From sequence record OM319461.1: a DNA stretch of 64,000 nucleotides. One strand, given 5' to 3'. Below, piece by piece: positions 4,735-47,157 of the stretch. Positions within the stretch are counted from its first letter, which is position 1. Each line of letters starts with the position of its first letter. Below the pieces are notes generated by a model, which was not told the DNA's origin, ran no database searches, and was given only the letters and a program-made list of their open reading frames with translations. Made by a program: the position numbers and the translations under genes.

Positions 4735-5187
4735 TTAAAGTTCGCCGTGACAATCCGTTGCGATAGGATCGTCTGGCAGCCATTGTGCATAGAGTTCGAC
4801 AAGCAACTCGGAAGCCGGATTCATTGCTGCATTATTGCGCTTAAGTACGTCATAGATTTTCGCACGAGAATCTTGGGCAATCACTGCACGCATCAACGCA
4901 GTCTTTTCTGTATCATCCAGTTTACGTCGATTGCGACGAATGGCATCGTCTAGATAAATCCCCTTGTTGCAATCACCACAGGTAAACCAGCGACCAATCA
5001 TGGCTTCCCAATAGATGCCGCTAATGCCCATGTCATCTGTCAGGATTTGGCCAGTGCGCTCCAGTAAATGGAAACCATTACAATCTGGGCATTTGTAAAG
5101 AATACTTGCACGATGATTTCGCACAGAGTACTTTGGCGGGTGGATGTTTGAAAGCTCCGAACCCAATACACTTCCGATTGGTATCAT
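4735..5187 (-). CDS. zinc-ribbon-containing hypothetical protein
   Basis: Two CxxC pairs (CPDC, CGDC). Confidence 0.6.
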   Translation of the reverse strand: MIPIGSVLGSELSNIHPPKYSVRNHRASILYKCPDCNGFHLLERTGQILTDDMGISGIYWEAMIGRWFTCGDCNKGIYLDDAIRRNRRKLDDTEKTALMRAVIAQDSRAKIYDVLKRNNAAMNPASELLVELYAQWLPDDPIATDCHGEL

Positions 5188-5975: not shown

Positions 5976-6638
5976 TTAGATTACTCCAGTTGATTTTTGC
6001 CATTGGTCGAAACCAGCTTTAAAGGTAAGCATCTGCACAGGACCTTCATAATCGACAGGAATTGCACAGTCTACGGTTTTACCATTTTGATAGTTAGCGA
6101 CAAATGTACGTGCGGTGTTTTGCATGTTCAATGTGTCACGACAATATGCCTTGACGACATCGAGGTCTTTTACCAATGTTGTACGAGTACCAATCATTGG
6201 GCTGTGGTGTGCAATACGCTGTAGTTGCCAGAACAAACGAGAGAACTGCCAGAAATGCGCTAGGTACTTGTTCTCCAGAGCAATAACAGTACGATCCCAC
6301 TTGAATCCCAATGTTTGTTCTTCCCCACCATCCATAACAACGACGTGCTCGCGCAAGGTACCTTCAGTACGAACGTATGGCTTAAAACAAAAGTCATCGT
6401 CGTTCTCGTCTGCTGGATTGTGAGCAGCCACCATCATACGTGGCTTGAACTCTTCTTCTGCTCGACAGAAATCGATCCATTGACATAACAACGATTTAAC
6501 ACGCTGGATTTCAAAGTCTGTGCGGCGAGTAAGAATAACTTGTTTGTAACCAGACAGTGCGTCAATGGGACACATGCGAATAGGGAAGTCAGTATGTGGC
6601 TCCATCAAGCCAGTTTTAATCTCTAGGTTTGCGGTCAT
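5976..6638 (-). CDS. hypothetical protein
   Basis: 220-aa ORF. Confidence 0.75.
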   Translation of the reverse strand: MTANLEIKTGLMEPHTDFPIRMCPIDALSGYKQVILTRRTDFEIQRVKSLLCQWIDFCRAEEEFKPRMMVAAHNPADENDDDFCFKPYVRTEGTLREHVVVMDGGEEQTLGFKWDRTVIALENKYLAHFWQFSRLFWQLQRIAHHSPMIGTRTTLVKDLDVVKAYCRDTLNMQNTARTFVANYQNGKTVDCAIPVDYEGPVQMLTFKAGFDQWQKSTGVI

Positions 6639-6990
6639 GTAAATAGCCTCTCATTTCAGAAGGTAGGATAACCATACGTGCACATTCTCGTTCATTACAG
6701 ATTACATAATCGTAAACCGTAAATCCAAAAGACGCGTACCATTTTGTTAGGTCATAATCACTAGGACCAGGCTCGCGATTAGAAACCGTCTCAGAACACA
6801 CTGTAAGACGAACAGCAAAGAAGTCATAGGTATCTTCGAGATAAGCGAAGAAAGCGACCATAAGAGACGTACCGTTTCCCTCTTGCCGATGCTCACTATC
6901 AACTATGATTAGATCGAGTTCAACGGTTTTGTCCGATTCGATATACTCATAGTCAATCCATCCGTGCTCGTATTCGAATTTGGATTCCAT
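6616..6990 (-). CDS. GNAT-family N-acetyltransferase
   Basis: Motif A-like LDLIIVDSEHRQEGNGTSLM and motif B-like LTKWYASFGF; likely start MESKFEY at 6990 after GGAG (track ORF 6616-7038). Confidence 0.8.
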   Translation of the reverse strand: MESKFEYEHGWIDYEYIESDKTVELDLIIVDSEHRQEGNGTSLMVAFFAYLEDTYDFFAVRLTVCSETVSNREPGPSDYDLTKWYASFGFTVYDYVICNERECARMVILPSEMRGYLHDRKPRD

Positions 6991-6991
6991 T

Positions 6992-7474
6992 TTAGAATCT
7001 CCGTGGTAACTCGTTTTCTGCAAAAGAGAACGAAACATTTGCCTTGCCTTTTAAATCACTGATTCGTAAATCGCGACGATGACCAGACAAAATGTAGCGG
7101 TTGTTATGCCGCTCTGACTTTGTTACGGACACATCTTCAAATTCACCACTGATCTGAACAGCAAGATAATGATCTATCGTCGGGAGTTCATCTCGGATAG
7201 CTTCAATACCTGCCAGATCCATACGAATATAAACCATCAGGTGAGGTTCAAGATGGATGTAGCTTTGGCCCAGCTTTACTTCTTTTACCTCGTGACCCAT
7301 AAAAGAGTTAAAGGTAAAAGAGTTTTCTGCATGCCACTGTAGATGCTCGGGCACTTCTTTCGAAATACCTCGCAGCAGTGGAAAGCTCAGCCATTCTGTT
7401 TCTGTTGACAATGCATGATCAAAAACTGGTAAAGGGATCATCGACTTGATGACCGTTTTTGCAAGTTCTTCCAT
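6992..7474 (-). CDS. hypothetical protein
   Basis: 160-aa ORF coupled to its neighbours. Confidence 0.7.
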   Translation of the reverse strand: MEELAKTVIKSMIPLPVFDHALSTETEWLSFPLLRGISKEVPEHLQWHAENSFTFNSFMGHEVKEVKLGQSYIHLEPHLMVYIRMDLAGIEAIRDELPTIDHYLAVQISGEFEDVSVTKSERHNNRYILSGHRRDLRISDLKGKANVSFSFAENELPRRF

Positions 7475-8295
7475 TACTTACCTCGACGATTTGTTTTACG
7501 TGCTGCTTTGCGTACTTTACGCTGTTTGCGAATAACTGCCTTTGAACGTTTTGGCTTTGTATCGCGATGACGAATAATTACGGTAGAGTTACCGTCATAG
7601 TCTCCACCAATAGCTTGCCATTCAGGGTAGCAGTCTGTACCGAAACCTTCTGCAATGACTGATGCCGTAATCGCTGTATCTAAATGTCGTGTAGTTCTCA
7701 CTTTACCTACTCCAATATTAACGTGTGGTTTAGTTCTTTCAAATTTCACTGATCTGTCAGCCATGAGTTCTTCTTTGATTTGATTGTCGACCAGCTCTAC
7801 TTCCTCGTCGTCTTCTACGAGTCCGATTTCATCTACTGACTTAGACGTGAGAGAATCAATGACAGTGAAAGGATTTTCGATCTTTGCGATTTCTGCTGTA
7901 ACTAAATAATCGTGGATTTGTTGTAATGCCACTTTGTCTTTTGGACGATCCCATACTTTCTTTTCTTCCACAATCTGCTCGAGACTTTGCACGGCAAGTC
8001 CATCGATATAGACAACCTCTGGTGTTTGTTTCCAACCAAAGCCAAAATCAAAGTCACCGATTTCATAGCGGGTTGTTGTATGTGTAACGCCATTGCTCAC
8101 ATAAGTATCTTCTCTGCGTGACAAAGCATCACCAAGGACAAGAACAACATCTTCGACATAACAATCAATGTCGTTAGTTGTTTCTTTTACGCCGTGCATT
8201 ACCATACTTGTACCATGCAATAAAACAGGTTCAATACCAGGAAATTTTGCTTTAAGTTCTTGTACCTTTTCTACAATTTGCTTTTTGTTAAACAT
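7474..8295 (-). CDS. pol-beta-superfamily nucleotidyltransferase domain fused to an EF-Tu N-terminus-like peptide and a basic tail
   Basis: N-terminal HGTSMVMHG...T.DIDCYV and [12 protein letters not shown] signatures; residues [12 protein letters not shown] at 7711-7746; K/R-rich C-terminus. Confidence 0.7.
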   Translation of the reverse strand: [273 protein letters not shown]

Positions 8296-8331
8296 AATCG
8301 TTACCTTTGTTCAATGATTGATAGTCACCTC

Positions 8332-8361
8332 GGTAATATAGAGATTCTAGTTGGTTGAAAA
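8332..8361 (-). promoter_or_regulatory. phage early promoter (TTTCAA-N14-TATATTAC)
   Basis: The reverse complement contains an exact TATATTAC with TTTCAA at the same spacing as the other copies; it lies directly upstream of the nucleotidyltransferase. Confidence 0.7.
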
Positions 8362-8377: not shown

Positions 8378-8405
8378 CCCCCACCTCCCGAAGGAGGCAG
8401 GGGGG
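8378..8405 (-). terminator. intrinsic terminator, UUCG loop
   Basis: ccccc-a-cctcc-cgaa-ggagg-ca-ggggg, with poly-A at 8358-8371 giving a U-tract on the minus strand. Confidence 0.8.
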
Positions 8406-8413
8406 GGGGGTAG

Positions 8414-8912
8414 TTATTCTGGAACCTGGATGCCATCAACATAGAAGTTATGAGTATACCAGCTATTTGTATTGGCCATGTATANNTTATNGNGCNNTGN
8501 TTCGTTTACNATGTCGANTNCAATAACACGCAANGCNTNNCATTCNTTNNNNGCNNANNNATCGTGNCTTACAATTGCNCGNCTGATNNGNTCNTAGNNC
8601 GGCATNTCGAAAGAAAGATCNTCAACATGCAGGCANCCTTCNNNNTCACGGGAAGAATGTCCAGCCCTCTAAACCGGTTTCTGTTATTACGCCATTGTTC
8701 TCCTCGACAGCTTTCTCGTTTTGATCGTCGTGGTCTGAACTGTACAGTACATTTACCGCTCCGTCCGCCTCCAGCGTAAACAAAACAATTGCTTCGCCGC
8801 ACTGCTGTGCAATGTTCGCGCCAATGAAATTATCTTCGTGGTCGATAACATTTACAGTTGTTTTAGCGTATGGTCCACCATGGCCTGTCTTCTTACAGAT
8901 TTTAACTAGCAT
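8414..8912 (-). CDS. hypothetical protein, probably one gene split in an N patch
   Basis: ORFs 8646-8912 and 8414-8605 flank the N-rich stretch 8480-8650. Confidence 0.5.
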
Positions 8913-8952: not shown

Positions 8953-9861
8953 TTATTTACGGAATACGAACTCACGTGGAATGCGAGCCAAGCCAGATAC
9001 CGCAATCGAGATAACTCGATCGTCATGGTATTCAAACTCAGTACGCATGATACGACAACCACCGACATCCTTTGTTACATAAGAGATCTCGATGATGTTA
9101 CCGTTCTGTTGGTCTTTACGAACAAGAGTAAAGTCTTCATCTTGAATCTCCATGATGCCAGTATTCGGTTTCCATACTGTTGAACGCTTGCCTTCTTCTA
9201 CAGTCAAAACATCGTTGATGGTTTCATACAGCGTAGCCGTACTCACNGTTGACATGTTCTCACTTTGTTTAACAAGAGTATACGAACCAATGTTTTTCAA
9301 GCGACCGTGACCAAGTCCTGTCTTGCGACAAGGTGCTGTACCATCTGCTGACTTAGCAAATACTTGCTCGTATTGNGTATGGTTCTCTAAGAACTGATGC
9401 TTGCTCGATGTCGTGCAACTATTGTTCTCATAGTCAAACTCGCGTGTCGTTTTAAGTGCTTTGTTCGTAAGCTCCTCTCCAACTAACTGGAAGTTAGACT
9501 TATTATAGAAACGNACAAGGTGAGCGCGTTTCTTGATTGCCTTAGGAACAACATCTGCTAACTCNGTTGCAAACTCNACGTGAACCGTGGCCTCTTCGAT
9601 TTTGAATTGACCATTGCCCGCATCCAGGTATCGCTTGATGATATGCATCGTAGAACCACATTTACTAATGCGCATGAAACCACCTTTGATCTCATGCAGG
9701 TATCCAACNGGATGTGCAGATATCATCATGTTACAGAAGTCCTCGAAAGTACAGTCACGCGTTAGCATGATGTGCTCCATAAGGATAGCGTCTACAAGAG
9801 GAACGCTCATTANCGTAGAGATGTTTTGTGCAGTTTGTGAGTTATGGTATTGTTTAAGCAT
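8953..9861 (-). CDS. hypothetical protein
   Basis: 302-aa ORF, GGAG ribosome-binding site, beta-rich C-terminus. Confidence 0.7.
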   Translation of the reverse strand: MLKQYHNSQTAQNISTXMSVPLVDAILMEHIMLTRDCTFEDFCNMMISAHXVGYLHEIKGGFMRISKCGSTMHIIKRYLDAGNGQFKIEEATVHXEFAXELADVVPKAIKKRAHLXRFYNKSNFQLVGEELTNKALKTTREFDYENNSCTTSSKHQFLENHXQYEQVFAKSADGTAPCRKTGLGHGRLKNIGSYTLVKQSENMSXVSTATLYETINDVLTVEEGKRSTVWKPNTGIMEIQDEDFTLVRKDQQNGNIIEISYVTKDVGGCRIMRTEFEYHDDRVISIAVSGLARIPREFVFRK

Positions 9862-10209
9862 AGGGGTCTCCTTTACGATAGGTCTTATCGTGCTTTTNTG
9901 TAAATAACTATTGAACTGTAAGACGTGTCATTCGAGTAGCCGCTGCTTTGCGGATACGCGCATGTTTACGTCGGTTTAGGTAGTGATGTGANGCTCATTT
10001 CTTCNANCGCACCTGAACGAGTAATACGTCCCCATCTTCCCTTTGCNTTATTCCAGCCNACCATGCCAGGCTCTGAATAAAACAAGGCATCACCAGGAAC
10101 CCAAACAACAACAGGTCCCTTGGCACGCTTGATGCGATTCTCAATCATGGTTTTGCGNCGACGGATGTCGGTAGCACTTGACCAGTCAAGAAAAGCAACT
10201 GGGTCTTTG

Positions 10210-10755
10210 TCAGNTGCATGNGAGNGTTTTAGTCAACCATACAAATGCATGGGCAAACCAATCATCCGTAAACTCGTGCGTCATGATAAACGTAGTGGGT
10301 GCAAAAGCAAAGATAACCTTTTTGCCNCGCATCNCATCTAGACCGATGTCAGTAAAGTAGTCCGCAATTTCTCGNACGGACATATAGCGNACAGTCGAAG
10401 GCGTCTTTACGACTAGCTCATGCACGATGATCTCTGGATGATCTTTAACATANCCATGCCAAGTATGATCAGGCAGTGGACCATCATCNAGAATCTCTGC
10501 TGCTTGACGCATTGTCTCTGCAACTTCGAGTTGCATCTTGACATCTTCTTCCACCGCTTCCATAAGAGAGACTTCTTTCTTCTTATGGTTGTTAAGCANT
10601 GACTCATGAGGAGGAACACCACAGAACTTTTCCAAGTCCTCGATCATTTCTTCCTCTGTTCTTGTCTTGCTGTTAGTCATGCACCAGTAAACAATACCGA
10701 ATGCAAACAACACAGCAACAATCAACTCCCAGTTTTCAGTTAGATGTCTAATCAT
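10210..10755 (-). CDS. membrane-anchored hypothetical protein
   Basis: N-terminal WELIVAVLFAFGIVYWC; may continue into ORF 9966-10148 across N positions. Confidence 0.6.
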   Translation of the reverse strand: MIRHLTENWELIVAVLFAFGIVYWCMTNSKTRTEEEMIEDLEKFCGVPPHESXLNNHKKKEVSLMEAVEEDVKMQLEVAETMRQAAEIXDDGPLPDHTWHXYVKDHPEIIVHELVVKTPSTXRYMSXREIADYFTDIGLDXMXGKKVIFAFAPTTFIMTHEFTDDWFAHAFVWLTKXLXCX

Positions 10756-11008
10756 TTTCTGTACTCCGGAAAATCACGACAGTCGACCATCGGGGTATTA
10801 CGATGGCCGTTGATGTAACAGTTACCTGTTTCTAGGTTACGGATGATCTCAACTGTTTTGTCCACCTTTACGGANGAGTAGATNTCCCANCGNTCCANNA
10901 AGAANTCTTCNCGANCATCNNNGNNNTCGANNCNTTTTNCCTANNAACANNGTCCCAAGTGANATAAGNNCAATGANAATAATGATNCCAGGNAGGTTTT
11001 TCANGATT

Positions 11009-11686
11009 TCAGATCTTNNCATNTTNANTCTCCATTCTTTCTAATTTGCGATCTAGTTTGNTANCCAAGTCAATCATGTCTTGTGCCGCGATTCGGTTAG
11101 AGAATTTATGAACTGGCTTGTTTTTAACAGTATCCATCTTAATGACCGATGCATANTCTTTGGCNGTNATGATATCAGTGATCAGACCTTCTTTGTGCCC
11201 AGAGACAGTAAGATCAAACTGATGGGCTAGCACGGTGGCTTCGTTCTTTTGTTTGTGNCCTTTCGTAANNTGGTCCATTTCTTCCATGATGAGTTCTGTN
11301 CTGTTCANCGGATGAACATGAACACAAAACCAAATCCCGTTACTGATAAAGAAGACGCGACACANGCCTTCTGGNGTGCGNCCACANAAACTNCTTGCCC
11401 ANTCATCNATNACGCCNTGAATCATAAAGCGACTAAACTCATTNGCNAAGTCATGATTGACNAGTACAAGATCTTCTCCATCTGTTTCTTGTCTAGCCAT
11501 GCGATGCAATGACATGATATCCGGATGAATCTCATTNNGNTGTACNNNAGCAAAATTGCAGCGCTTTGGATCATCNGATGGAAAGACAACTTTCTTTTTC
11601 TTTGGCTTAAAGTAAGACCANAGCTGTTTCATTGCATAAACAATACAAACCAAGGCAATTGCCCCAAACGTGATTTTCTCGTACAT
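11009..11686 (-). CDS. membrane-anchored hypothetical protein
   Basis: N-terminal ITFGAIALVCIVYAM followed by the basic stretch KPKKKK. Confidence 0.65.
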   Translation of the reverse strand: MYEKITFGAIALVCIVYAMKQXWSYFKPKKKKVVFPXDDPKRCNFAXVXXNEIHPDIMSLHRMARQETDGEDLVXVNHDXXNEFSRFMIXGXXDXWAXSXCXRXPEGXCRVFFISNGIWFCVHVHPXNXTELIMEEMDXXTKXHKQKNEATVLAHQFDLTVSGHKEGLITDIXXAKXYASVIKMDTVKNKPVHKFSNRIAAQDMIDLXXKLDRKLERMEXXXXKI

Positions 11687-11699
11687 GGTGATTTCTCTG

Positions 11700-12173
11700 T
11701 TAGTGAATTTCTTTTACTTCGATGCGCTTCTGGAACCAGTATGGGCGGTTGAAGTAATGTTTNCTTANGGTACATGGCATTGTATCGACATGCAAATTAN
11801 GCTTGNCNNTACCANGAGGNATGTTTTCCGCATTAAGGATACAATCNTCNCANTGNTTGTTCATTCCGCCNTGTGANCCNACACAGGCCGCNCTNANGGT
11901 ACTCTCTGGATTAACGAACGATGTTTCAATTGCAAATCGTTTTGACTTGACGGTAATTAAAACATAATTGTCGTCCGTGATCACCAATGTGCGCCCATAG
12001 AGGTTAATGCGTTCTACGCCGTCTTCGGTTTGAATGCGAACCCAACGCTCCTGCCATTTACCAGGCATGCGTTCTTCTAACATGATGTTTTCGGAGGTTA
12101 CGAAAATGACGTCCTCTAACTTGGACGCCATAAATTCGATATCTCCTACAATCGGTTGTAGGATTTTAGCCAT
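11700..12173 (-). CDS. hypothetical protein
   Basis: 157-aa ORF; the C-terminal third is N-affected. Confidence 0.6.
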   Translation of the reverse strand: MAKILQPIVGDIEFMASKLEDVIFVTSENIMLEERMPGKWQERWVRIQTEDGVERINLYGRTLVITDDNYVLITVKSKRFAIETSFVNPESTXXAACXXSXGGMNXXXXDCILNAENXPXGXXKXNLHVDTMPCTXXKHYFNRPYWFQKRIEVKEIH

Positions 12174-13054
12174 TGATCTCTAGCTCCATTACTTGTCCGT
12201 NTTTAACCCACTTGTCGCCGACGTACTCGGTAGCACCNTANTGNTCGAGTANCTCNTCAGGNATNNNCACNTTAATCTTTTCNCCAGTNACGAGNTGGAT
12301 CTTNGTNGCNTNTAGNTTACGCATAGGNAACTCATCGATGTCNTCGAGTTNCTTTTCNTNTGCNTTNAGGAANTCACGATCCATGTCATCACAGTCCNTA
12401 AGGATNTTCCANGGAATACCACCNCTNCCATCNAAGAGATGGAAAANACGATCTTCTANNNTCGCNGTCANCAGNCANTGNGTNNTTGTANGATANGACT
12501 NNCCCTTGAANAGNACGTCAGCNTCTANGCCAAGTACATACTCTGCATCNTCNTTAAAGTTAAACCCNACACGNATTGGCTTTACTGCNTTNCGTACNGC
12601 NTTATGCANTTCAGCTACACGACGATAGATTTCNTCNTTGCCTTCGATTATNGCNGCATAGTGACCAAGGANGTNGGAANAAGAAGCCCATGGTAGATNN
12701 TCCATGACGTCNNNTTCTTCNGTACCNCCACCCCANAACTCAACGGCCATCTTTTCAGGATGCTCNACACTNTCGTCACCNAANCCTTTNGTNATNCCNC
12801 ANTCCCAGTCGTTCTTNGTGTTAACTGGACCNATCAANAGAAAGCCATGTTCNCTNACTGCCANTGTCGGTTTGAATNGGATTNTCNTCGGTAAAACGAA
12901 AACGTTCTGGAATCCACGGGATGTTTTGGATAATGACACATTCGAGCTCGACAGATGAGTCGGTGATTGCCACTGGAACAAAGCCATTGATGGCTACGAT
13001 GTTTTCGAGTTGCTGTTTACCTGCGTTCAGGTAGTTCAGTGTTGCTTTAGACAT
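12166..13054 (-). CDS. hypothetical protein, probably one gene with an N-patch frameshift near 12880
   Basis: ORF 12821-13054 has a strong GGAG site (MSKATLNYL...); the frame of ORF 12166-12987 looks protein-like only after the N patch. Confidence 0.5.
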
Positions 13055-14645: not shown

Positions 14646-14675
14646 GGTAATATAGAAAAGAAAAAAGCTTGAAAG
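14646..14675 (-). promoter_or_regulatory. phage early promoter (TTTCAA-N14-TATATTAC)
   Basis: ggtaatatagaaaagaaaaaagcttgaaag; exact TATATTAC core and the conserved upstream hexamer. Confidence 0.7.
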
Positions 14676-15262: not shown

Positions 15263-16399
15263 TAGAAATTCTCTAGTGATTCGTTAAANTTNTNTGCTCC
15301 CTTAAANAGNTCNGNNGANATANNNGTAAGACTCTTGCANCGAGCATTNANCTTGTTNGCAAGNAANCCATNGTCCATNGACCAAAAGTAGTTTACTTGN
15401 GTAGGNCGATACTCTGAACGNNCNTGNTGTAANACNACNGTCTTNCCAGTTGCCTCNTGGATCTCTTTAGCAAACGCCATNGCTTTNCCAGCTAGNGCCG
15501 NAGGGAGAATNATGATAAAGTAATCTGCGTCAGATNCNATAGCCGCNNATACGTTATCNGGGTTGATTAAGTAACGTTGNTTTTCAACGATCGGGTAATG
15601 GTAGAAAGCACTGATCAATGCATTCTNAGGAAAACCTTCTTCCTTNAGAGTACANGGCTTNCANTNAGGCATCGGTAGTACNCGACGNTGTTCNTTAAAG
15701 TAGNCAGTNTANNCTANCANNGGGAACATNGANAGATGCAGNNNNTCATCGATCTCTTTGATGNNTTCCAAAGCNGANCGATANCGCTCTTTGCCAATGA
15801 TNGCNTCNATAAAGAAACGAGGCATNTTAGNNAGCTTCGTTTTACCTTTAATGATCTGTATCGGATCATTGATCAATTCCAGGGTTTCCGCTACAGTAGA
15901 GCCACCGGTNACACGNAGNCTNCNATANTCAGGNTCACTGAANNGNCCAACNGANTCAAAGTTACNNACACAGAAGAAGTCNAGGTTATCTANTAACAAC
16001 TTGTCTTTCTCTGCGTTTGGNGGAACACGATCAATCAGTGCGTANNTGTCACCNTTCTTGTAACACATGCGNGCAGCCGCTACTGCNAACTCACGNGANT
16101 GCCATAAANCATCATGNGAGATAGAAGCAGTCAGATAGCCTTCCATGTCTACNTTNGTTACAAAGTTTTCTTCNNCNTTCTCNTGNTGNCTNACNANGTC
16201 ANTGAAAGATGTCCTTGGCCATGTTTTCATANGAGAACGCNGAGCGAAGGATTTTNACNGCTGGGTGNCGATACTCATCCATTTTGAAATTAGGGTCAGT
16301 TAGTTTACCCAGTTCAAATAGGTCGTTAGGGTGAGCAAAGTTGCCGCAAAAGTCAACAAGGAATGGGAGGTGGTCGTTAAGGTTAAATGACGCGGTCAT
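15262..16399 (-). CDS. hypothetical protein, N-rich, probably one gene
   Basis: Start MTASFNL at 16399; the frame switches near 16270, at the edge of an N patch, into ORF 15262-16278. Confidence 0.5.
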
Positions 16400-19298: not shown

Positions 19299-20420
19299 TT
19301 AATGCCATCCAGAACAGATTATGTAGTTCTTGACAGCTTGCTTATCAAGGCGAAGCAACAGACGCTCCATACAAGTCATTGGTTTGTCAGACATCGCATT
19401 GTATGGCACTGGGTACTGCGTGCTAAAGTCCGTAGAACCATAAGTAACAGTAGATGTATAAACGTTACTAAAACCAAGTTTCTTTGGTTCGTATCGATAC
19501 GTCGCATTCCAATACGTAGTAGGTAAACGATTGATCGTAGTATCAATATCATACCATGGATATGCGTTACAGTAACGTGGACGGAAGAGGTTTGCCTTTA
19601 TTGCTGCTTCAATGAAAGGTTTAAACTCTTTGTTTCCAGAACGACGCAATAACTCTAGCTGGTACTCGCTGATTGTAATACCGCCTTCTACTTCATACAT
19701 CAGAGCAGCTGGAGCTTGTACATATTCAGCAGAACGATTGCGTTTTGTTTTAGAACGCATTTTTACATAAGTCGTACGATTTACATGCACCGCACGATAC
19801 ACTTTTACTTCACGGCCGATCTTGTTGATATCATCAACGTGGAAAGAACCCATGCGGTAATGTGTATAGCGGTTAAAGTCTACCGGTGTATGGTAGTAAT
19901 GTACGTCTTGTGCAAAGCTACGTCCATAGAACGGCACGGTAATGATTGGTTTTGTAAAGACATCCGGATACATAGACGAAGCCGTTGCACCGTAACGAGC
20001 ATTGCGGTTGANCATCAATAGTCGCTGCATGCGGTTNAAGTANTCGNTNTCTTCCANNATNNCTNTTTGNTGNGGCNTCAANTCTNNTTCGATTANTGAA
20101 TCCAANCCATANGCTACNGANTTACCCATTGTNCGNCCAGCCATANNAAGCTGNATGTCNGAACGNNNCATCCCAGTATGNGCACCATAGATGCGCGGCT
20201 CTGGTTTAGGNTGNTTGATNTACCCNCCCANTGNGTCAATCTTGATNGTTTCACATGCTGNNTNCAAAGCNNCNGCCATCTTTTCTCCAAANTCNTTCGA
20301 GANNATTTCTGGTTCTTTGAGGCGNGTTGGTGCCATCAAGCTTTCTGGGAATACNACATTGTTTCTGTTCATTCGTAGATCTGNCATGATTAAANTTCCG
20401 TNTCTGTTGAGTTTAGCCAA
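19299..20420 (-). CDS. hypothetical protein
   Basis: 373-aa ORF; the N-terminus is N-rich and may be fused with 20390-20845. Confidence 0.65.
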   Translation of the reverse strand: MAKLNRXGXLIMXDLRMNRNNXVFPESLMAPXRLKEPEXXSXXFGEKMXXALXXACEXIKIDXXXGXIXXPKPEPRIYGXHTGMXRXDXQLXMAXXTMGXXVXYXLDSXIEXXLXXXQXXXXEXXXYXNRMQRLLMXNRNARYGATASSMYPDVFTKPIITVPFYGRSFAQDVHYYHTPVDFNRYTHYRMGSFHVDDINKIGREVKVYRAVHVNRTTYVKMRSKTKRNRSAEYVQAPAALMYEVEGGITISEYQLELLRRSGNKEFKPFIEAAIKANLFRPRYCNAYPWYDIDTTINRLPTTYWNATYRYEPKKLGFSNVYTSTVTYGSTDFSTQYPVPYNAMSDKPMTCMERLLLRLDKQAVKNYIICSGWH

Positions 20421-20845
20421 TTAGTAAGTTCTGTTTCACGCTCTTTGCGTTTCGCTTCTTCCTCCAGCCATGCTGGATGATCAGTTAAGATCTTGCGATC
20501 NTTTACCGTGATGTAACCTTTTGGTGCAAATGGTAAAATCTTACTTTTGCCAATACGTCGAGCTAGTAATGGATCGTAGTTGTCGTTACCGTGTTCTACC
20601 CAGTCNTTGTATACATGGATCTCTCCAGTAGACANCANGATAGGTTGNCCTTGNTGTTCNCCGATGATGCGNCAAACATANTANGTCTTAGCGTAGTCAC
20701 ACGCAAGAAACGANCACTCTTTNACAAGCACTACNTTNTGATGCTTGCGGTGNTTACGAAACCAATACANNACNGNNTCNTGGTGNTTNGCATTACGGAT
20801 GCCGTGNTACAANGCCATNCCGCCGTANTTCTGNGCCNAAGTCAA
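20390..20845 (-). CDS. hypothetical protein (N-affected)
   Basis: 151-aa ORF; boundaries uncertain. Confidence 0.45.
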   Translation of the reverse strand: MTXXQXYGXMXLXHGIRNXXHXXXXXYWFRXHRKHXXVVLXKEXSFLACDYAKXXYVXRIIXEXQXQPIXXSTGEIHVYXDWVEHGNDNYDPLLARRIGKSKILPFAPKGYITVXDRKILTDHPAWLEEEAKRKERETELTNWLNSTXTEX

Positions 20846-20853
20846 NCAGATGG

Positions 20854-21492
20854 TTAAACTTCTCTTGTGTTTTGTTTTTCAANANNTTGCGAATCTTCAT
20901 TGATCTTTTCTCTCTNNTAAATAGGTGAACTAAGNACNCGNCGTAANTGNGANGCCGANGGCATGTTCCACTGCATNATACGCNNTGGNTTTAGCTTTTT
21001 CTGNGGTANCTTTTGNAGGATATCTNGNTCNGGNACGATCTTGTTGCGTACTGCGGCTTTCTTNGCNGTNACNTTTGCAACGTCNTGTTCNACAAGATAN
21101 AGNCCNGTTCTNTCNGCNGNAAGACGATCTACTTCTTTNTANACNTTTAANNCACAAAGNGNACGCCAATTCATTTCTCGTACCTGTTGNCCACGATGGT
21201 TACCGTTGATGCGATANCAAAGCAATTCAACTTCCATGGCTCTTTTCTCNGCATTCCATTTTNCAGGATGNACNAGATAGATAGCCACGTCTGACTTGTT
21301 GATGGCATCTCTTAGTTCGAGTATCTTGTAGTAAGCGTCTGCCGGAAGAATGATTCCACTAGGACGATTACGTTTCTCTTCGATCAATTTAACCAGAGAC
21401 TCTACTGGCCATGACATATAAAGAGAAGAAGGTTTTTCAATCCAGTTCGGAGTTAACATAACTGGAAACGGTAGTGCATTGATTAGTGCCAT
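20854..21492 (-). CDS. hypothetical protein (N-affected)
   Basis: 212-aa ORF overlapping the upstream stop. Confidence 0.55.
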   Translation of the reverse strand: MALINALPFPVMLTPNWIEKPSSLYMSWPVESLVKLIEEKRNRPSGIILPADAYYKILELRDAINKSDVAIYXXHPXKWNXEKRAMEVELLXYRINGNHRXQQVREMNWRXLCXLXXXKEVDRLXXXRXXXYLXEXDVAXXXXKKAAVRNKIXXXXDIXQKXXQKKLXPXRXMQWNMXSXXXLXXXLSSPIXXREKINEDSQXXEKQNTREV

Positions 21493-22019
21493 AATTCATT
21501 CTCCATAACTTCTACGTCTACGGCATGGCCNAGTGAAACAATACTTAACTCATGATCNTCATCTAACAATACNGATGGTGCTTCATAGATACGCTCTGGT
21601 CCCCATACGTGATTGCGATAAAANACNGTACGGAAAGCAGAGATACGTACAGACATTGACTTGTCAGAATTGCAGAAAGTACGAATAGCTGCACGATCAA
21701 GTTCTTTTGNATTTCGTAATCCTGAATCCATTGCGTCAATAAAAGCATCGGCCAGTTTCCAGCCAGTAATACTAAACTCTTCAGCGATTGTATCCAAAGC
21801 ATAAAAGAACTTAGTAATCTCACCATAGTCATAATGGTCCTNTANGTCACGCAGNAGGCGNNNNGGACNNATGTCGCACATTCTCTCGAATGCTTCACTT
21901 AAAACTATTCTGTCGCCTCTCTGTGCTGATTTGACNCATGCAGTTGGCATTTCAAATCCCTGTGGCTTTANCATGACAATAANGCCATAGAAATCTGCNT
22001 GTAAAATTGCGTTGTTCAT
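21483..22019 (-). CDS. hypothetical protein
   Basis: 178-aa ORF. Confidence 0.65.
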   Translation of the reverse strand: MNNAILXADFYGXIVMXKPQGFEMPTAXVKSAQRGDRIVLSEAFERMCDXXXXRXLRDXXDHYDYGEITKFFYALDTIAEEFSITGWKLADAFIDAMDSGLRNXKELDRAAIRTFCNSDKSMSVRISAFRXXFYRNHVWGPERIYEAPXVLLDXDHELSIVSXGHAVDVEVMENELWH

Positions 22020-22050
22020 TTTGATTTACCTGGTTTCGGATAAAAAGAAT

Positions 22051-22074
22051 AAGAGGAGCCGAGAGGCCCCTCTT
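22051..22074 (-). terminator. intrinsic terminator
   Basis: aagagg-a-gcc-gaga-ggc-c-cctctt with an A-tract on its left. Confidence 0.6.
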
Positions 22075-22079
22075 GTGTT

Positions 22080-23045
22080 TTATTTTGTTAGNGANANNGC
22101 NGCNGCTGTNNTNGCGATGTCTTTTGGCACCATAGGCTCGATTCGCCATCCTGATGTAATCTCATCTGGACGATCATAGTAAGCTTTGTTCCAGTACGTC
22201 TTGTTGTCTGTTGTTTCCATTAGACGATGGTAGTGAGCACGTACGCGTTCTTCTGCTTCCAGAGGAGCAGTAATCAAAGAACCCAATTCACGCTCTAGTG
22301 CAAGGTACTGATGTACTGCGCTTTCTACTTCGTATTGTGCACGATGGAAAGGTGCATCGTCCCAACACAGATAGTCTGGTGCAAGTTCCACTAACTCTTT
22401 GAGCATGCCGTCATCATCGCCTTTATTTGGAATAAAGATAGAAGCCACGTAACCACCGGAACAGTACATGGTGGAATGAACCGGCGCTTCCATTTCATTT
22501 AGGCGAGCGACCGGCGCAGAAACATACGGATGACGAGTTAGATCAGTTGCTACACGTGTTTGCATATACTCTGGTAACAGATTATTCATCTCAGCTAAAA
22601 CAAATTGATCTGCTTTAACAATAGGACGATTAATACTCAGAGTCACCATGCCTTTACCATGGAACTTGGCATTGTAGAAACTAAACACTTTATTCATCAT
22701 CGAGCGACCACGCTGGCGTGGAGTAAACACAAGTGAATCCTTGCCGTTCAGCATAAGGAACAAAGAAGACACCATTGTTTCGTTTGCATGAAACTGAACG
22801 CCTTCTTTATTGGTAACAGAAGGGATACGCAATACTTCACGAAAGAAGTACCATGGGTTATCACGACACTCAGTAATCACACGCTCTTGTTCCGCAACAG
22901 TAAGACCTGGATCATGNGGATCGATTGCTTCGATGNTGTCATCGATTTGNTGCAAACAGAAACCCCAGTTCTTAATGCCTGTNTTNTTCAGNCCCATTGC
23001 GTATTGAAAGAATGANTTGTTGTCTGTGCAGATATTAACGTACAT
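22080..23045 (-). CDS. truncated paralogue of the phiKZ-type terminase large subunit (ATPase N-terminal region)
   Basis: GIKNWGFCL...D.HDPGLT...ECRDNPWYFFREVLRIP...PRQRGRS resembles the N-terminus of phiKZ-like terminases (EC..NPWYFFRE, PRQTGKS); only 321 aa, with no room for a nuclease domain. Confidence 0.7.
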   Translation of the reverse strand: MYVNICTDNXSFFQYAMXLXXTGIKNWGFCLXQIDDXIEAIDXHDPGLTVAEQERVITECRDNPWYFFREVLRIPSVTNKEGVQFHANETMVSSLFLMLNGKDSLVFTPRQRGRSMMNKVFSFYNAKFHGKGMVTLSINRPIVKADQFVLAEMNNLLPEYMQTRVATDLTRHPYVSAPVARLNEMEAPVHSTMYCSGGYVASIFIPNKGDDDGMLKELVELAPDYLCWDDAPFHRAQYEVESAVHQYLALERELGSLITAPLEAEERVRAHYHRLMETTDNKTYWNKAYYDRPDEITSGWRIEPMVPKDIXXTXXXXXLTK

Positions 23046-23337
23046 ATTTGTTTTCCTCTCAGGAAGTTAAAGAAGATGCCCTCGGCACCACTATTAGAAA
23101 AGACAGAGATTANTTNCCGGCGTNTNTTGCTCGACAANCCTCAAGGTCTTGGATNGANTCATGATAGCAATTATANGTTTTACCGNCGACTTTTATATCG
23201 TGGCTNTGTCTTTTCTTGCNATCTTGTGTNCTTTTTCNGATTACNAAAGGNATGNTNNTNTANGNCTTTCCANCAATNTTTACTNTGGNCATTGTATANN
23301 CTCCATGCTATGTGATTATANTGTCATAATCCACATT

Positions 23338-23367
23338 GGTAATATAGANNACAAAAAAGAATGAGAC
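23338..23367 (-). promoter_or_regulatory. phage early promoter (TATATTAC core)
   Basis: The reverse complement of ggtaatataga contains an exact TATATTAC; it overlaps the terminator at the end of the giant gene. Confidence 0.55.
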
Positions 23368-23387
23368 TGCCCGAAGGCAGNCTCATT
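23360..23387 (-). terminator. intrinsic terminator, UUCG loop
   Basis: aatgag-a-ctgcc-cgaa-ggcag-n-ctcatt just after the stop at 23401. Confidence 0.8.
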
Positions 23388-23400
23388 AAAGGTTATTAAG

Positions 23401-26400
23401 TTAACAAGNAACACCCCATTGTGGNTGTAGTGCCGCGTTACCNGCAAAGCCCGCATTCAAGTCGAAACTTGTNGGAGCTACNGTTATCTTNGGAANACAC
23501 CANCNAGAGATNTCTTGGTTCATGCNAGGTTGCTCCAGAGAACATACCTGCCATGTNTGTAACTTCAGTAAANGTCCANGTAANAGGAANTGCATTGAAC
23601 GANGNNGCATCAGCAAACATGTAAGACATGTTCGTTNCTTTACCNGTTTGCCAGAAGTCNATNCCNNTNCCAGTAAACGCNGTTGCNCCANNGAACATTT
23701 CGCTCATNTCAAGNACTTCACCAAAGCTNAACCACANCATGTCTNGATCAAACTTAGGCGCGTTCTTNAACATTGCCTTNGCNTTNGTAATCGANNCAGT
23801 CTGTAGNGATACTNCTTGGTNAAAGATNGAAGCACCTTCNAACATAGACTCTGCGTNTTNNAGTGCNTTNGTACTTGCCCAGTTTANCATCGCNCCNTTN
23901 ACNCCNTCTGCCGAGCCGTTGTTAAACGCCACTGCATCATGGAAGATNAANGANAGGTCNGTTGCCTTNGTGAACTGAAGTGANGCTACGTTTTGGTTAA
24001 ACATTGCAGCTTCACTNAACATTTCNTTNGCAGTAGTNACATTACCNACNTCGAANGGAACNNCTTGGTTGAACGATNCNGCATGACAGAACATNCCNTT
24101 CNTACTTTCAACNNCAGCTGTATTCCAAGTCAGTGGGTTNTCACTTACACCTGGAGCNGANCCNTTGTTAAACACGAGAGCTTCTTTAAAGACGCTNGNC
24201 ATACTTATCAACNTTNGCNGTATCCCANTGATTCAANTCTTGGTTAAAGACNGAAGCACCNAGGAACATAGACNTGATGTCTGTNCCGGCCTTAGCAAAG
24301 GTCATGTTAGGCAATGGTTGGTTGAANGNCGTAGCNCTCTGGAAGACCTGGGTCTGTGNNNNAGAGTTAGCAAAGTTGATAGTCAATGGATTATCACTTG
24401 CTCCCGCNNCNGANCCNTTGTTAAACGCTGTTGCNCCATTNAACATCGAACGAACCGCNCNAACNGNNGAGAAGTCNAGGTTNTTGACGTCNTGGTTAAA
24501 CGATGTAGCATTNCTNAAGAAGAAGCTTACATCAAACGCTTTAGGGAANGTCCAGTTCGTTAGTGGTTGGTTAAACGCAGTTGCTCCNNGGAATACACCT
24601 TGCATGTATCCACCTTCCACTGTACTCCANCTNCCNACAGGCTGNTTAAAGCTTGTTGCGCCAGAGAACATGTTGTAGAAGTTAGTACAACGTGACATNT
24701 CCCATGNATCAATCTTACCNTTAAACGCGGTTGCACGTTCAAAGATAGCTGCTGCNCGAGTAGGAGCNAANCCAACCCAGCTTTCNANGTCNNGGTTAAA
24801 NGCTTTCGCATCNGTAAACACACGGTCTGCNTTTTCTACTGCTGANAGATCCCAACCAGAGATNTCTTGGTTGAAGTTTGCAGTGTCTCTNAAGATACCT
24901 GCGATCGATNTCAGATGNGCAGTTGCCCANGNTGNCATGTCACTCAGGATAAAGTCTTCACCAGNCAANGCATATTCAGCCGAAGTCGAGAANGTCATGT
25001 CAGTGTANNCNGCACGACCACCACAAGGACCAGANGGAATAGAATCATCACCAGANCCATCAGGTCTGATTACAACCGCACNCCATTTAGGTTTGTACGT
25101 GTTGCTGNTGAATTTCNTCCANAGTTCTTGACCGCCNGNATTAGCCAAGCGAGCAAAGTGNGCNTTACCGATTGTTGGGTATTCTACGATNACCTCACAA
25201 GCAGNAGTTACNCCNGCNACCTCGAAGCTTCCTCCACTAGTCANTTCTAGNGCACCAACACCATTGCTATCGACTTGGTANCTAAAGCCNTTGCCAAGAA
25301 CCGCATCNTTACCATTGNCNGTCATGTCCTCAATANAGCGAACTGTTTGACCTGCTNCNGTAACNGGAACNGTCTTAGCNNNNTCNTGCCACATGCGTGA
25401 TGTNTCTTGCATGTCGAANGCCGCTAGCATGCCTGTAGTATCGATGGTTGTTGTAGGTGCTTTAGTACAGCCTGCCATGTTAGCCCAATCAGGCAATTTC
25501 GCAGGTTGAGTAGCAATAGGTGCACCAGTCGCAAACGCGGTTGGTTCAGTTGTGATGTTTGGTACACACCAACCAGAGATATCCGCATCCATACTGTTCG
25601 CACCGCCGAACATGTTGGACATGTTGGTAGCACTACTGAAGTCCCAACAATTCAATGCCTTGTTGATACTTGTGTTACGGAAGATACGTGTAAAGTCAGT
25701 GATGTTAGAAACATCCCAGTTATCTAGGCCCTTACCAGTGAATGCCATAGCAATCCAGAATAGACCCGTTAGTTTCGTTGCTGATGGTACAAGCAGTTCG
25801 CTAACGTCCGCATCGTAGATGCTACAACGATATAGCATATCTTCATAGCTATCTAATACAGGAGCCGTCATCTTGATTGGTTGGTTTAACTTAAAACATT
25901 CTGCAAACATACGTTTAACGTTTGTAGCAGTCGGTAAGTTAAGTTCCATTGGTACGCCGACATTGTCAAACTCACGACAGTAGCCAAACATCGTATTGAT
26001 GTTATCGCCGCCGATTTGTCCGATGCCATTGATGTTTTGGTTGAACACATGACAGTGACTGAACATAAATGCCGTTGCTGTTGCATTCGATAAGTCAAAC
26101 GAACTGATGTCTTGGTTAAAGGCGTTCGCGTTGTTAAACATACTCATGAAGTTTGTACCCGCAGAGGTATCAAAGCTCAATGGTTTGTCATTACCAACAG
26201 TCGAGCCGTTGTTAAACACCTTAGCTTGCAAGAACATAAAGCTGAAGTTCGTGTTCTTACTTGTGTCCCATCCACTTAGGTCTTGGTTAAAGGCCCAACA
26301 TGCACGGAACGCCGAAGACATGTTTGTTGCGTTCTTCGTATCCCAACCTGAAACATCTTGGTTAAAGACTTTACAGTAACCAAACACACCGTTCATGTCG

Positions 26401-44258: not shown

Positions 44259-44328
44259 GGTTTTGTTCCTCGTCTTAAAAATGGCCTGTCTAATAAATTT
44301 GCCAAAAGCATAAATAAAGAAATNCCCC

Positions 44329-44344
44329 CTGGCCNGATGGCCAG
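44329..44344 (-). terminator. probable intrinsic terminator
   Basis: ctggcc-ngat-ggccag with A-rich sequence on its left, after the helicase stop. Confidence 0.55.
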
Positions 44345-44361
44345 AGGAGNATTNCAGAGGT

Positions 44362-46409: not shown

Positions 46410-46423
46410 TATATCATCTCCGG

Positions 46424-46756
46424 TTATGCGTTTACCTCTACTCCNTCGAAATAGANTTTACGCGGTTTAATGTTTAGATCGTGCATGACCTTTGCGAGGG
46501 NTAGTGCACTCTCCTCGTTNAGGTCAGTTAANTAAAGNGCGCTTAACTNCTTNAGCCTTTNTTGTTTGACGGAAAGATATCCCCGCCAAAAGTCTTCGGT
46601 NATNNATTGATNNCGATGNGANGCAATNACCAATCCNNNNTTNCCTATAAANTTNCCTAGNTGTGCANANNCAATNTCTTGNCCNTNCTCTCNNTCATNN
46701 ANTTCGAGNTCTAGTTCTGACAAGTCACTNAAACTTGTCGGGCCTTTTGTCGTCAT
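46424..46756 (-). CDS. hypothetical protein
   Basis: 110-aa N-affected ORF upstream of the helicase. Confidence 0.55.
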   Translation of the reverse strand: MTTKGPTSXSDLSELXLEXXXXEXXQXIXXAXLXXFIXXXGLXIXXHXXQXXTEDFWRGYLSVKQXRXKXLSXLXLTDXNEESALXLAKVMHDLNIKPRKXYFXGVEVNA

Positions 46757-46783
46757 AGCGTACTCACTTAGAGGTTGAACCTC

Positions 46784-47157
46784 TTACCAATCAGTAGCNT
46801 GNAAGTCAGTACCAAGATANATTCCNCCNGGNGAATACATCGATTTTGGTTCTTTGGANNTGTCCTTTTCTTTNTTGGCTTCTTTNAANCCNTACTCNNT
46901 TAANAACTCNTCCATNGTTACTAACTCACTACCNGTAGCNCGTGCCATCTTTTTCGCATTGGTTAAAACACGAGCATCAGTGAATGCATGCTCATGATTC
47001 CAGTACCACTGTAACATAGCTTGTTTTTGCTTGTCTGTAGCACTGCCTCGCTTTTTTTTTGATGCCACCCATGTGACGTGCAATATAACTGCGCCAACGT
47101 CCAATCTGCCATTCGTCTTCTGGTTTGCCTTTGTGCTCTATTTCACGACGTCCATAG
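46784..47157 (-). pseudogene. degenerate or frameshifted conserved phage hypothetical gene
   Basis: The frame FYGRREIEHKGKPEDEWQIGRWRSYIARHMGGIKK joins KRGSATDKQKQAMLQWYWN only through a +1 shift in the A9 run (47052-47060); the first frame has no start codon. Confidence 0.45.

Follow-up and report, generated by a model that had tools for sequence, protein, structure and literature searches.

An EF-Tu N-terminus look-alike joined to a predicted nucleotidyltransferase in a Vibrio jumbo phage, with stand-alone counterparts in other phages

The DNA considered here is a stretch of 64,000 nucleotides from record OM319461.1 (hereafter the window), in which one open reading frame at 7474-8295 encodes a small nucleotidyltransferase-like domain followed by a copy of the N-terminus of elongation factor Tu (EF-Tu). 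The frame reads as given in a preliminary description, including its EF-Tu-like 12-mer at 7711-7746 with 11 of 12 residues identical, and the acidic linker noted there between the two parts is likewise present. The gene and its immediate surroundings comprise the following features:

7474..8295, minus strand: whole fusion gene, 273 aa plus stop
7903..8295, minus strand: minimal Pol-beta-type nucleotidyltransferase domain (phrog_12854), residues 1-131, as predicted by alignment, AF2, Foldseek and PHROGs
7765..7902, minus strand: acidic linker, residues 132-177 (pI 4.1; 14 D/E, 3 K/R)
7636..7764, minus strand: EF-Tu N-terminus look-alike, residues 178-220, starting at Met178 (phmmer, NCBIfam, alignment)
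7711..7746, minus strand: core of the look-alike, residues 184-195, EF-Tu identity 11/12
7561..7635, minus strand: short acidic segment, residues 221-245 (sequence composition, shuffle test)
7477..7560, minus strand: Lys/Arg-rich tail, residues 246-273 (15/28 K/R, pI 12)
6992..7474, minus strand: downstream 160-aa gene, its ATG overlapping the fusion-gene stop (TAATG)
8303..8308, minus strand: weak Shine-Dalgarno sequence (AAGGT) preceding the ATG at 8295-8293
8332..8342, minus strand: promoter-like motif TCTATATTACC, which recurs after terminators
8378..8403, minus strand: intrinsic terminator (11-bp GC-rich stem, then a T run) ending the upstream transcription unit

The fusion gene is that of the Vibrio jumbo phage C-ZP2022/vB_pir03; the C-ZP2022 copy is identical and the vB_pir03 copy lies 2 nt apart (a synonymous change at K189, and I240T). 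These two phages, nearly identical to each other, are the only carriers found, and in both genomes the EF-Tu-like module continues the reading frame of the enzyme domain, this frame being open over 96 codons through the EF-Tu-like block and the tail. With the whole fusion as query, a word-indexed search returned the phage's own protein as sole match, and an exhaustive representative search returned enzyme-domain relatives plus two spurious repeat proteins, which were rejected as relatives of the whole fusion (P0003 as a tandem-repeat artefact, P0011 as a Gly-rich repeat protein). PADLOC and NCBIfam searches with the fusion gene gave nothing useful, no PADLOC family matching, Rfam gave no match, and no tRNA genes were found within the window. 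Separately, N runs are scattered through the deposited record in 13 clusters; a hypervariable region was briefly weighed and dropped, since runs that are in the deposited record itself and spread over 13 clusters are more likely due to consensus quality.

That this is the first gene behind a promoter, as had been proposed, is in line with the upstream terminator and with TCTATATTACC, whereas the further qualification of that promoter as early would be conjecture; the homologue of the gene in phage phiR1-37, g077, is expressed constitutively. Within the window, TCTATATTACC has three exact copies, all intergenic, on the coding strand and after terminators, and four further copies with one mismatch, all on the minus strand; its copy number alone is not above chance. 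In phiR1-37, terminator and promoter are arranged alike ahead of g077, whose own RNA-seq-verified promoter carries TATATAATTAC at the position equivalent to TCTATATTACC; g077 is transcribed throughout infection and stands outside the 'early' class. As for translation, the fusion is likely the product actually made, because no internal ribosome-binding site is recognisable ahead of Met178: the Shine-Dalgarno pairing energy there (-1.8 kcal/mol) lies in the usual range for random internal ATGs and is weaker than that of 92% of the 25 gene starts examined. Given the TAATG stop/start overlap, the fusion gene and the downstream 160-aa gene are probably translationally coupled. The latter has no match in Pfam, NCBIfam, PADLOC or PHROGs, and the fusion-gene neighbours yielded nothing from PADLOC, NCBIfam or PHROGs and only sub-threshold GNAT and Lar-like matches from Pfam.

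The assignment of the N-terminal domain to the nucleotidyltransferases is borne out by residue conservation, by a confident AF2 fold (pLDDT >90 across residues 1-140) and by structural comparison. Its key residues are G28-T-S, D42xD44, FD82FG and R117xKD120, so that the hG[GS/T] loop and the DxD on the next strand are present as H27-G28-T-S and D42-I-D44. In a 43-sequence family alignment, G28, D42 and D44 are invariant or near-invariant, and FD82FG is the family consensus and a candidate third catalytic carboxylate. All top Foldseek matches are nucleotidyltransferases, namely TM1012 (probability 1.00), JHP933 (1.00, second-ranked, with a TM of 0.22-0.26) and LnuA (0.91); PHROGs assigns the domain to phrog_12854 (E=1.5e-17), and Pfam DUF6036 stays sub-threshold (13-14.5 bits vs a 23.6-bit cut-off). 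We take this module, of LnuA/TM1012-like character, to be a small Pol-beta-type nucleotidyltransferase that is probably active. It occurs as a free-standing protein of ~130 aa in more than 40 relatives, all of which lack the acidic linker and the entire C-terminal extension. The closest of them, at 82% identity, is 135 aa long and ends at residue 135, and its contig (L003) holds no gene equivalent to the extension downstream, the neighbours being unrelated. The preliminary description had suggested that close homologues lacking the motif would betray a recent neutral insertion. For the enzyme domain such homologues do exist; yet, because the domain stands alone in so many relatives, including the one at 82% identity, the comparison of sequences shows that two modules became fused in this lineage rather than that a neutral insertion took place.

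The C-terminal module opens with the look-alike block, which corresponds to EF-Tu residues 1 to about 40, that is, strand beta1, a ruined P-loop and helix A. For residues 184-220 the sole match is EF-Tu, over its residues 4-40 and with two small indels. When residues 170-273 were compared with all PDB sequences by phmmer, all 41 matches were EF-Tu, aligned over its residues 3/4-40 with E-values from 6e-4 to about 1, and four NCBIfam EF-Tu models aligned residues 183-218 to model positions 4-40, at 12 bits vs cut-offs of 450-520. Local alignment against Vibrio EF-Tu scored 76, as compared to 21.5 +/- 4.6 for shuffled sequences (z~12), and the similarity is thus far beyond chance; in the six-frame translation of the window the core motif occurs a single time. 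The P-loop is destroyed, as had been claimed: GHVDHGKT has become G-KVRTTRH, two residues shorter and without the G1 pattern GxxxxGK[ST], and Pfam GTP_EFTU (PF00009) does not match the fusion protein even at E<=10. The G2 (RGITI), G3 (DxxG) and G4 (NKxD) motifs are absent as well, and EF-Tu similarity does not extend past about EF-Tu residue 40; a remnant of RGITI/beta2 in residues 221-250 was considered and rejected (shuffle p=0.93), and residues 221-245 have no detectable relatives. Judged by these motifs, GTP binding by the module is impossible and it is no GTPase. The tail (residues 246-273) is devoid of D/E and is modelled by AF2 as a helix, with pLDDT falling below 50 for residues 183-245 (54 for the FLC9-type protein described below); the module is accordingly not predicted to fold alone, as would be expected of a motif that becomes ordered when bound.

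Selection on the peptide can be gauged by comparison with host genes. The 36-nt segment hardly varies among 16 Vibrionaceae tuf genes (15 Vibrio, 1 Aliivibrio); from these, the phage core differs at 6-8 of 36 nt with one residue changed (V to I); the codon changes include CGT to AGA, and the longest exact run in common with Vibrio tuf is 9 nt. Among the phage copies, mean pS is 0.88 and mean pN 0.10. Furthermore, in 10 of 11 phage proteins residues 5-19 (EF-Tu numbering) are much better kept than 20-43, the latter range containing the P-loop that is invariant in real EF-Tu. Since the residues stay although change at synonymous sites is close to saturation, the data show purifying selection on the peptide and speak against fresh debris, in agreement with the earlier proposal that it is kept rather than a neutral remnant.

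The same proposal had regarded the peptide as a host fragment captured in this protein. A selected EF-Tu look-alike it is, by the above measures, but not a unique capture: at least six other phage lineages, with Vibrio, Burkholderia and Aggregatibacter hosts, carry small stand-alone ORFs composed of an EF-Tu N-terminus, a decayed P-loop and a Lys/Arg-rich tail. A search of phage proteins for the motif, as had been advised, hence finds it conserved elsewhere in stand-alone form, but fused only in the two near-identical phages. The stand-alone ORFs stem from Vibrio phages 207E48.1, 1.244.A/1.255.O, 150E35-1, Va2 and 2.058.O/3.058.O/henriette as well as from Burkholderia jumbo phage FLC9 and Aggregatibacter phages Aaphi23/S1249, and include:

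59 aa: NVP2058O_086, henriette VPDG_00052 and Aaphi23 ORF27
longer: 207E48.1 p0029 (126 aa) and FLC9 gp386 (107 aa)
longest: 150E35-1 P0089 (239 aa) and the Va2 'elongation factor Tu' (195 aa)

PHROGs groups the stand-alone mimics as phrog_27465, listed without function, and our literature search turned up no publication on them. The FLC9-type subfamily comprises 12 sequences with 55-77% identity to FLC9 gp386; neither the EF-Tu peptide nor the basic tail varies among them, and variation is greatest where the P-loop used to be. 150E35-1 P0089 and the Va2 protein retain ERGITIS/ERGITVS. ORFs fused to tuf 5' sequence in viral contigs L005-L007/L015 were weighed as attachment-site junctions and rejected, as they are FLC9 gp386 homologues and full small proteins. 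A profile search for further mimics was swamped by true EF-Tu fragments and yielded the FLC9-type set only, and across the lineages no conserved partner gene was found beside the mimic. By sequence, then, the look-alike is not a one-off and resembles a recurrent class of stand-alone phage ORFs. The module of the fusion may nevertheless be an independent capture rather than a member of phrog_27465, because the phrog_27465 HMM matches it weakly (E=0.034, 15 bits) and over the EF-Tu motif only; in a scan at E<=0.01, 10 of 11 sequences match, including the EF-Tu reference itself, and the fusion module does not.

A copy of the EF-Tu N-terminus that is under selection in many lineages, with the GTP loop discarded, therefore suggests that something in the infected cell reads the peptide. 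We favor, at a probability of about 0.5, the view that the module mimics the EF-Tu N-terminus as a selected peptide, or bait, which in this phage lineage has been joined to an enzyme. Such a bait would engage a factor of the host or of a rival element that recognises the N-terminal segment of EF-Tu, the basic tail could add affinity for RNA or the ribosome, and fusion to the enzyme would bring the bound factor beside the nucleotidyl-transfer active site. Action by mimicry, nucleic-acid binding by the tail and an enzyme acting on the bound partner are what we infer from this architecture. In folded EF-Tu most of the peptide is a buried beta-strand, and because of this burial a reader would need nascent, unfolded or cleaved EF-Tu, or else the flexible first ~8 residues. 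We know of no bacterial reader of the EF-Tu N-terminal peptide; to our knowledge, the segment is read only by the plant receptor EFR. The two modules may also be linked incidentally, given that the closest enzyme homologues work without the extension and stand-alone mimics without an enzyme or a conserved neighbor. A more far-reaching version, to which we give rather little credence, is that unrelated phages converged on, or retained, a ~16-residue EF-Tu copy and a basic tail against a host pathway that reads it (for example, surveillance of nascent or damaged EF-Tu), with the nucleotidyltransferase fusion of pir03-like phages disabling the captured factor covalently as a 'bait-and-modify' counter-defence.

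Other explanations have to be weighed against the bait. The preliminary description had itself considered that the peptide steers the enzyme to the translation machinery, in which case peptide and basic tail would direct it to EF-Tu, aminoacyl-tRNA or the ribosome, where a tRNA 3' end or a translation factor would be modified. The covalent fusion of the modules in what is probably the product made, the very basic tail, transcription from the gene's own promoter-like site and the fact that some Pol-beta-fold relatives act on tRNA ends would all suit such a targeting device; yet peptide and tail stand on their own, with no enzyme, in at least six other lineages, the enzyme occurs without the peptide in more than 40 relatives, and structurally it comes closest to LnuA/TM1012-type transferases of small molecules rather than to enzymes that modify tRNA. 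Nor do we know of evidence for tRNA or ribosome binding by EF-Tu residues 1-40 alone, and we consider targeting rather unlikely. The other earlier suggestion, that the module is a decoy soaking up a protease, kinase or sensor that acts on EF-Tu, would be a special case of bait reading and draws on the existence of defences that act through EF-Tu. Lit cuts EF-Tu at G59-I60. The type IV Thoeris caspase cuts it at R45/R59, and Avs7 binds its domains II/III. The ERGITIS/ERGITVS kept by 150E35-1 P0089 and Va2 is the region cut by Lit and the Thoeris caspase; this region, however, is lost from the fusion protein, and the known cut sites (R45/R59, G59-I60) fall outside the conserved peptide. The stretch conserved throughout the lineages, residues 4-19, is not known to be read by any defence, and with Thoeris cutting being promiscuous and the fusion protein matching no PADLOC family, a decoy in this narrower sense seems unlikely.

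Three alternatives remain. The peptide could be functionless debris, a stretch from the 5' end of a host tuf gene that was picked up through illegitimate recombination and is translated by read-through from the enzyme gene, and indeed the fusion is limited to one lineage whose nearest homologue ends at residue 135, Met178 resembles the relic of a former start codon and the block is predicted to be disordered. This is nonetheless very unlikely in view of the near-saturated synonymous divergence from tuf with 1 residue changed in 12 codons next to 24 decayed residues, the independent recurrence of the same constraint pattern in many phages and a frame open for 96 codons. An internal start at Met178 could instead release a free 96-aa mimic, so that one ORF makes two proteins and the fusion is incidental; the stand-alone relatives do begin with a Met 3-6 residues before the motif, much as Met178 is placed, but the Shine-Dalgarno signal ahead of it (-1.8 kcal/mol) does not rise above background, and we judge this improbable. 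Finally, tuf 5' sequences in several viral contigs might suggest that the tuf-like DNA or RNA matters rather than the peptide (as a recombination site, antisense or regulatory RNA, or translational enhancer). The contigs in question, though, hold members of the protein family or true tuf genes, the 9-nt run is the longest exact match to Vibrio tuf, codons vary freely among phage copies while residues are kept, and an Rfam match is absent, which together leave a nucleic-acid element with hardly any likelihood.

Few bacterial proteins are as abundant and as conserved as EF-Tu, which several defences and phage replicases exploit. Should a partner of the bait be found, it could reveal a new mechanism of host takeover or counter-defence and, at the same time, the function of phrog_27465; the nucleotidyltransferase fusion offers a handle on this partner because the enzyme may mark it covalently. 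If no partner exists, these proteins would still illustrate clearly how phages can domesticate a fragment of a host gene.

Comparison with known systems places each module in a wider context. With TM1012 (2ewr), the lincosamide adenylyltransferase LnuA/LinA (4fo1), phiR1-37 g077, itself annotated as LinA-like, and phrog_12854, the enzyme domain has in common the predicted fold and the G-[ST]...DxD signature, at 11-16% identity, whereas none of these small transferases carries a C-terminal extension. The kinship to AbiEii and MenT that had been put forward stands at the level of the superfamily fold, which these DUF1814 toxins and JHP933, a DUF1814-type protein, have in common with the enzyme domain; the best matches are nonetheless LnuA/TM1012-like, and no AbiEii-type family of Pfam or PADLOC matches the fusion protein. 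In contrast to the enzyme domain with its 131 residues, the toxins comprise ~250-300 aa with a C-terminal helical domain, and no antitoxin-like gene is recognisable among the neighbors. The mimic block corresponds to the EF-Tu segment (flexible N-terminus, beta1, P-loop, helix A) known as the 'elf18' region, but unlike EF-Tu proper it has no P-loop, switch regions, G3/G4 or domains II/III and sits inside another protein. The phrog_27465 proteins are closer in design, with a Met 3-6 residues ahead of KF.RT.PHVN.G (Met178 being placed likewise), P-loops in various states of decay and a Lys/Arg-rich tail at the C-terminus analogous to that of the fusion; they are free and small, whereas here the module forms the C-terminal part of an enzyme, and no similarity is detectable beyond the EF-Tu-like block. 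A further parallel is provided by phage-borne bL12 domains within larger polypeptides (Mizuno et al. 2019, PMC6375957), in which a piece of the host translation apparatus likewise resides in a phage protein; those are whole folded domains that retain their interaction residues, whereas the mimic is a sub-domain piece of ~40 residues.

The gene of interest encodes a nucleotidyltransferase domain that is followed by a look-alike of the EF-Tu N-terminus, and its extent and 12-residue EF-Tu-matching core had been given accurately in the preliminary description. The layout is as follows:

7474-8295, minus strand: fusion gene, 273 aa
7711-7746, minus strand: 12-residue EF-Tu-matching motif (translation of the ORF)
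Residues 1-131 of the fusion protein: enzyme domain
Residues 132-177: acidic linker
Residues 178-220: EF-Tu-like block, beginning with Met
Residues 221-245: short acidic piece
Residues 246-273: basic tail (15 of 28 residues K/R)

Vibrio phage C-ZP2022 (287.9 kb) has the identical gene, listed as a 'hypothetical protein', while the copy in vB_pir03 (286.3 kb) differs at two bases, one synonymous at K189 within the motif and the other causing I240T. The window and the deposited C-ZP2022 record agree in sequence, down to the scattered N characters (1079 in the window, in 13 clusters: 1415-1815, 8485-8645, 9247-12887, 15289-16268, 20012-25419, 44324-46940); these point to a mixed population or to a consensus of low confidence. 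Several ORFs of the window consequently translate with X residues; the fusion gene is free of N.

When residues 170-273 were searched against all PDB chains (phmmer), 41 sequences matched, every one of them an EF-Tu aligned over its residues 3/4-40. The same region is aligned by the four NCBIfam EF-Tu models, and the EF-Tu alignment scores 76 as compared to 21.5 +/- 4.6 for shuffles. The similarity ends at about residue 220. The P-loop, previously described as destroyed, is indeed substituted and shortened, no later G motifs are present in the fusion protein, and Pfam GTP_EFTU does not match it.

The main new finding is that this look-alike is not unique to the window phage. A tblastn search of phage genomes with the C-terminal 96 residues returned small annotated ORFs in other phages, and follow-up searches enlarged the set. 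Their translations are free-standing proteins of 59-239 aa that each start with Met, run within a few residues into KF.RT.PHVNVG.IGH, diverge from there on, and have a Lys/Arg-rich tail at the end. Such ORFs occur in:

Vibrio phages 207E48.1 and 1.244.A/1.255.O (Ackermannviridae)
Vibrio phage 150E35-1
Vibrio phage Va2
Vibrio phages 2.058.O/3.058.O/henriette 12B8
Burkholderia jumbo phage FLC9
Aggregatibacter phages Aaphi23/S1249 (within the nin region)
Coordinates of such ORFs: L019:2489-2869, L027:2001-2402, L028:1998-2717, L029:1575-2162, L020:2489-2668, L030:2001-2180, L021:1522-1845, L031:1501-1680
Coordinates in viral contigs (FLC9 gp386 homologues): L005:453-776, L007:2005-2319 (minus strand), L015:6842-7156

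IMG/VR pattern scans yielded four more FLC9-like copies, one on a 310-kb contig, and nine metagenomic clusters came from a profile search. The Ackermannviridae, 150E35-1 and Va2 proteins represent three Vibrio subtypes that are homologous over their full length; what the other lineages have in common is limited to the EF-Tu-like block and the basic tail. The P-loop is decayed or intact among the stand-alone relatives, with 150E35-1 P0089 and the Va2 protein retaining both it (altered to GHVDHGRT in Va2) and ERGIT(I/V)S. Some of these ORFs were deposited as 'elongation factor Tu', 'EF-Tu GTP binding domain protein' or 'P-loop NTPase', and PHROGs groups them as phrog_27465, with no function assigned. 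The module of the window matches this group only weakly (E=0.034) and may share its ancestor or stem from a separate capture. Its peptide-plus-tail arrangement either belongs to, or converges on, a class of phage proteins that is as yet unstudied and of which full-text literature searches found no description.

Across 16 Vibrionaceae genomes (15 Vibrio, one Aliivibrio), the corresponding 36-nt tuf segment is nearly invariant. The phage copy matches it at 28-30 of 36 bases, with a longest exact run of 9 nt; a single difference alters a residue (V to I), and the change from CGT to AGA amounts to two base changes. A comparison of the 12 codons among eight phage copies plus an E. coli-type tuf gives averages of 0.88 for pS and 0.10 for pN. 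In 10 of 11 phage proteins, retention is significantly higher at residues 5-19 (mature numbering) than at residues 20-43, a stretch whose P-loop is invariant in genuine EF-Tu. The FLC9-type subfamily, which is the best sampled (n=12, 55-77% identity to FLC9 gp386), shows no variation in the EF-Tu peptide or in the tail, and it varies most where the P-loop used to be. These comparisons together rule out a recent neutral capture and a function at the DNA or RNA level, and they show that it is the peptide that is constrained and not the binding of nucleotides. A captured tuf fragment devoid of function is contradicted by the selection data.

AF2 assigns pLDDT <50 to residues 183-245 and models the tail as a helix; the mean pLDDT of the FLC9-type protein is 54. 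The EF-Tu-like piece corresponds to strand beta1, P-loop and helix A of a G domain, a unit that is not known to fold alone, and the best fit is a motif that would fold upon binding a partner.

For the enzyme domain, 44 matches came out of an exhaustive scan of 1.84 billion representatives; 42 of them span residues 1 to ~131 and are mostly ~110-175 aa long, and the other two, repeat proteins, were spurious. In the family alignment, G28, D42, D44, D120, R117 and K119 are invariant or nearly so and FD82FG is the consensus, AF2 pLDDT exceeds 90 for residues 1-140, and strong PDB matches (Foldseek) are nucleotidyltransferases only (TM1012, JHP933, then LnuA). PHROGs lists the domain as phrog_12854 with no function assigned, and none of the AbiEii-type models in Pfam or PADLOC matches it. 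We therefore file it as a minimal Pol-beta-type nucleotidyltransferase and not as a member of AbiEii/MenT, which upholds the original enzyme call. A homologue, g077 of Yersinia jumbo phage phiR1-37 (L002:3951-4396, 131 aa), was annotated as LinA-like and has a promoter and a terminator to itself. RNA-seq verified this promoter and showed constant transcription of the gene; an antisense RNA, misc_3, that covers the 5' end of g077 is reported in the same paper (PMC4848604).

The closest enzyme homologue, P0002 (82% identity, 135 aa), ends at the usual family end point; on its metagenomic contig (L003), the next gene is unrelated and has a ribosome-binding site of the ordinary kind. Two further genes are common to contig and window (37% and 28% identity; L003:82-1319 versus 10273-12170), which makes the contig a distant relative of pir03-like phages; its local gene order differs. 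Residues 132-273 match no other protein in the exhaustively searched representative library, and joining enzyme and EF-Tu-like module is a lineage-specific novelty. Because the Shine-Dalgarno pairing ahead of Met178 (-1.8 kcal/mol) is at background level, no better than at random internal ATGs and weaker than at 92% of real starts, the protein made is probably the fusion, and Met178 is most readily explained as what is left of the start of a formerly separate gene.

Ahead of the fusion gene lie a strong terminator and a TCTATATTACC motif, and no other gene intervenes. This terminator (8378-8411, minus strand) starts with a run of 11 C, a homopolymer in which length errors or slippage could arise. 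Related features are:

8332-8342, 14646-14656, 23338-23348, minus strand: promoter-like motif TCTATAT(T/A)ACC, exact copies
582-592, 52057-52067, 60930-60940, 63913-63923, minus strand: the same motif, one mismatch
6616-7038, minus strand: weak GNAT-like ORF, 140 aa, second gene downstream within the same string (four Pfam models of GNAT acetyltransferases match below threshold, E 0.002-0.075)
4735-5187, minus strand: 150-aa ORF that weakly resembles the Lar restriction-alleviation zinc ribbon, below threshold (E 0.012)

The position of the three exact copies, directly after terminator hairpins and ~40 nt ahead of an ATG, makes the motif a candidate promoter of the phage; by count alone, its recurrence on the coding strand is not above chance. 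The order terminator, AT-rich promoter, gene is matched in phiR1-37. Downstream, the stop codon overlaps the start of a 160-aa gene with no function assigned. The neighbours have no PADLOC, NCBIfam or informative PHROGs match, and no gene consistently adjacent to the mimic was found across lineages.

Of the roles originally proposed, mimicry as such gains support from selection and recurrence, while steering of the enzyme to the translation machinery is weakened because each module occurs without the other. The Lit cut site in EF-Tu is G59-I60. Cleavage by the type IV Thoeris caspase, which is promiscuous, falls after R45 and R59 (bioRxiv 10.1101/2024.10.24.620036), and Avs7 grips domains II/III (PMC13581612). 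A decoy against such EF-Tu-directed defences is conceivable for the longer relatives, which retain the RGIT region; the protein of the window, however, has lost it, and the defences described so far act elsewhere on EF-Tu. We favour, at about even odds (roughly 0.5), a selected mimic of the EF-Tu N-terminal peptide that would act as bait, with the basic tail as its putative anchor, both fused here to a predicted active small nucleotidyltransferase.

The nearest parallel in the literature is provided by phage-encoded bL12 domains, which, like the block described here, are embedded in larger phage polypeptides (PMC6375957).
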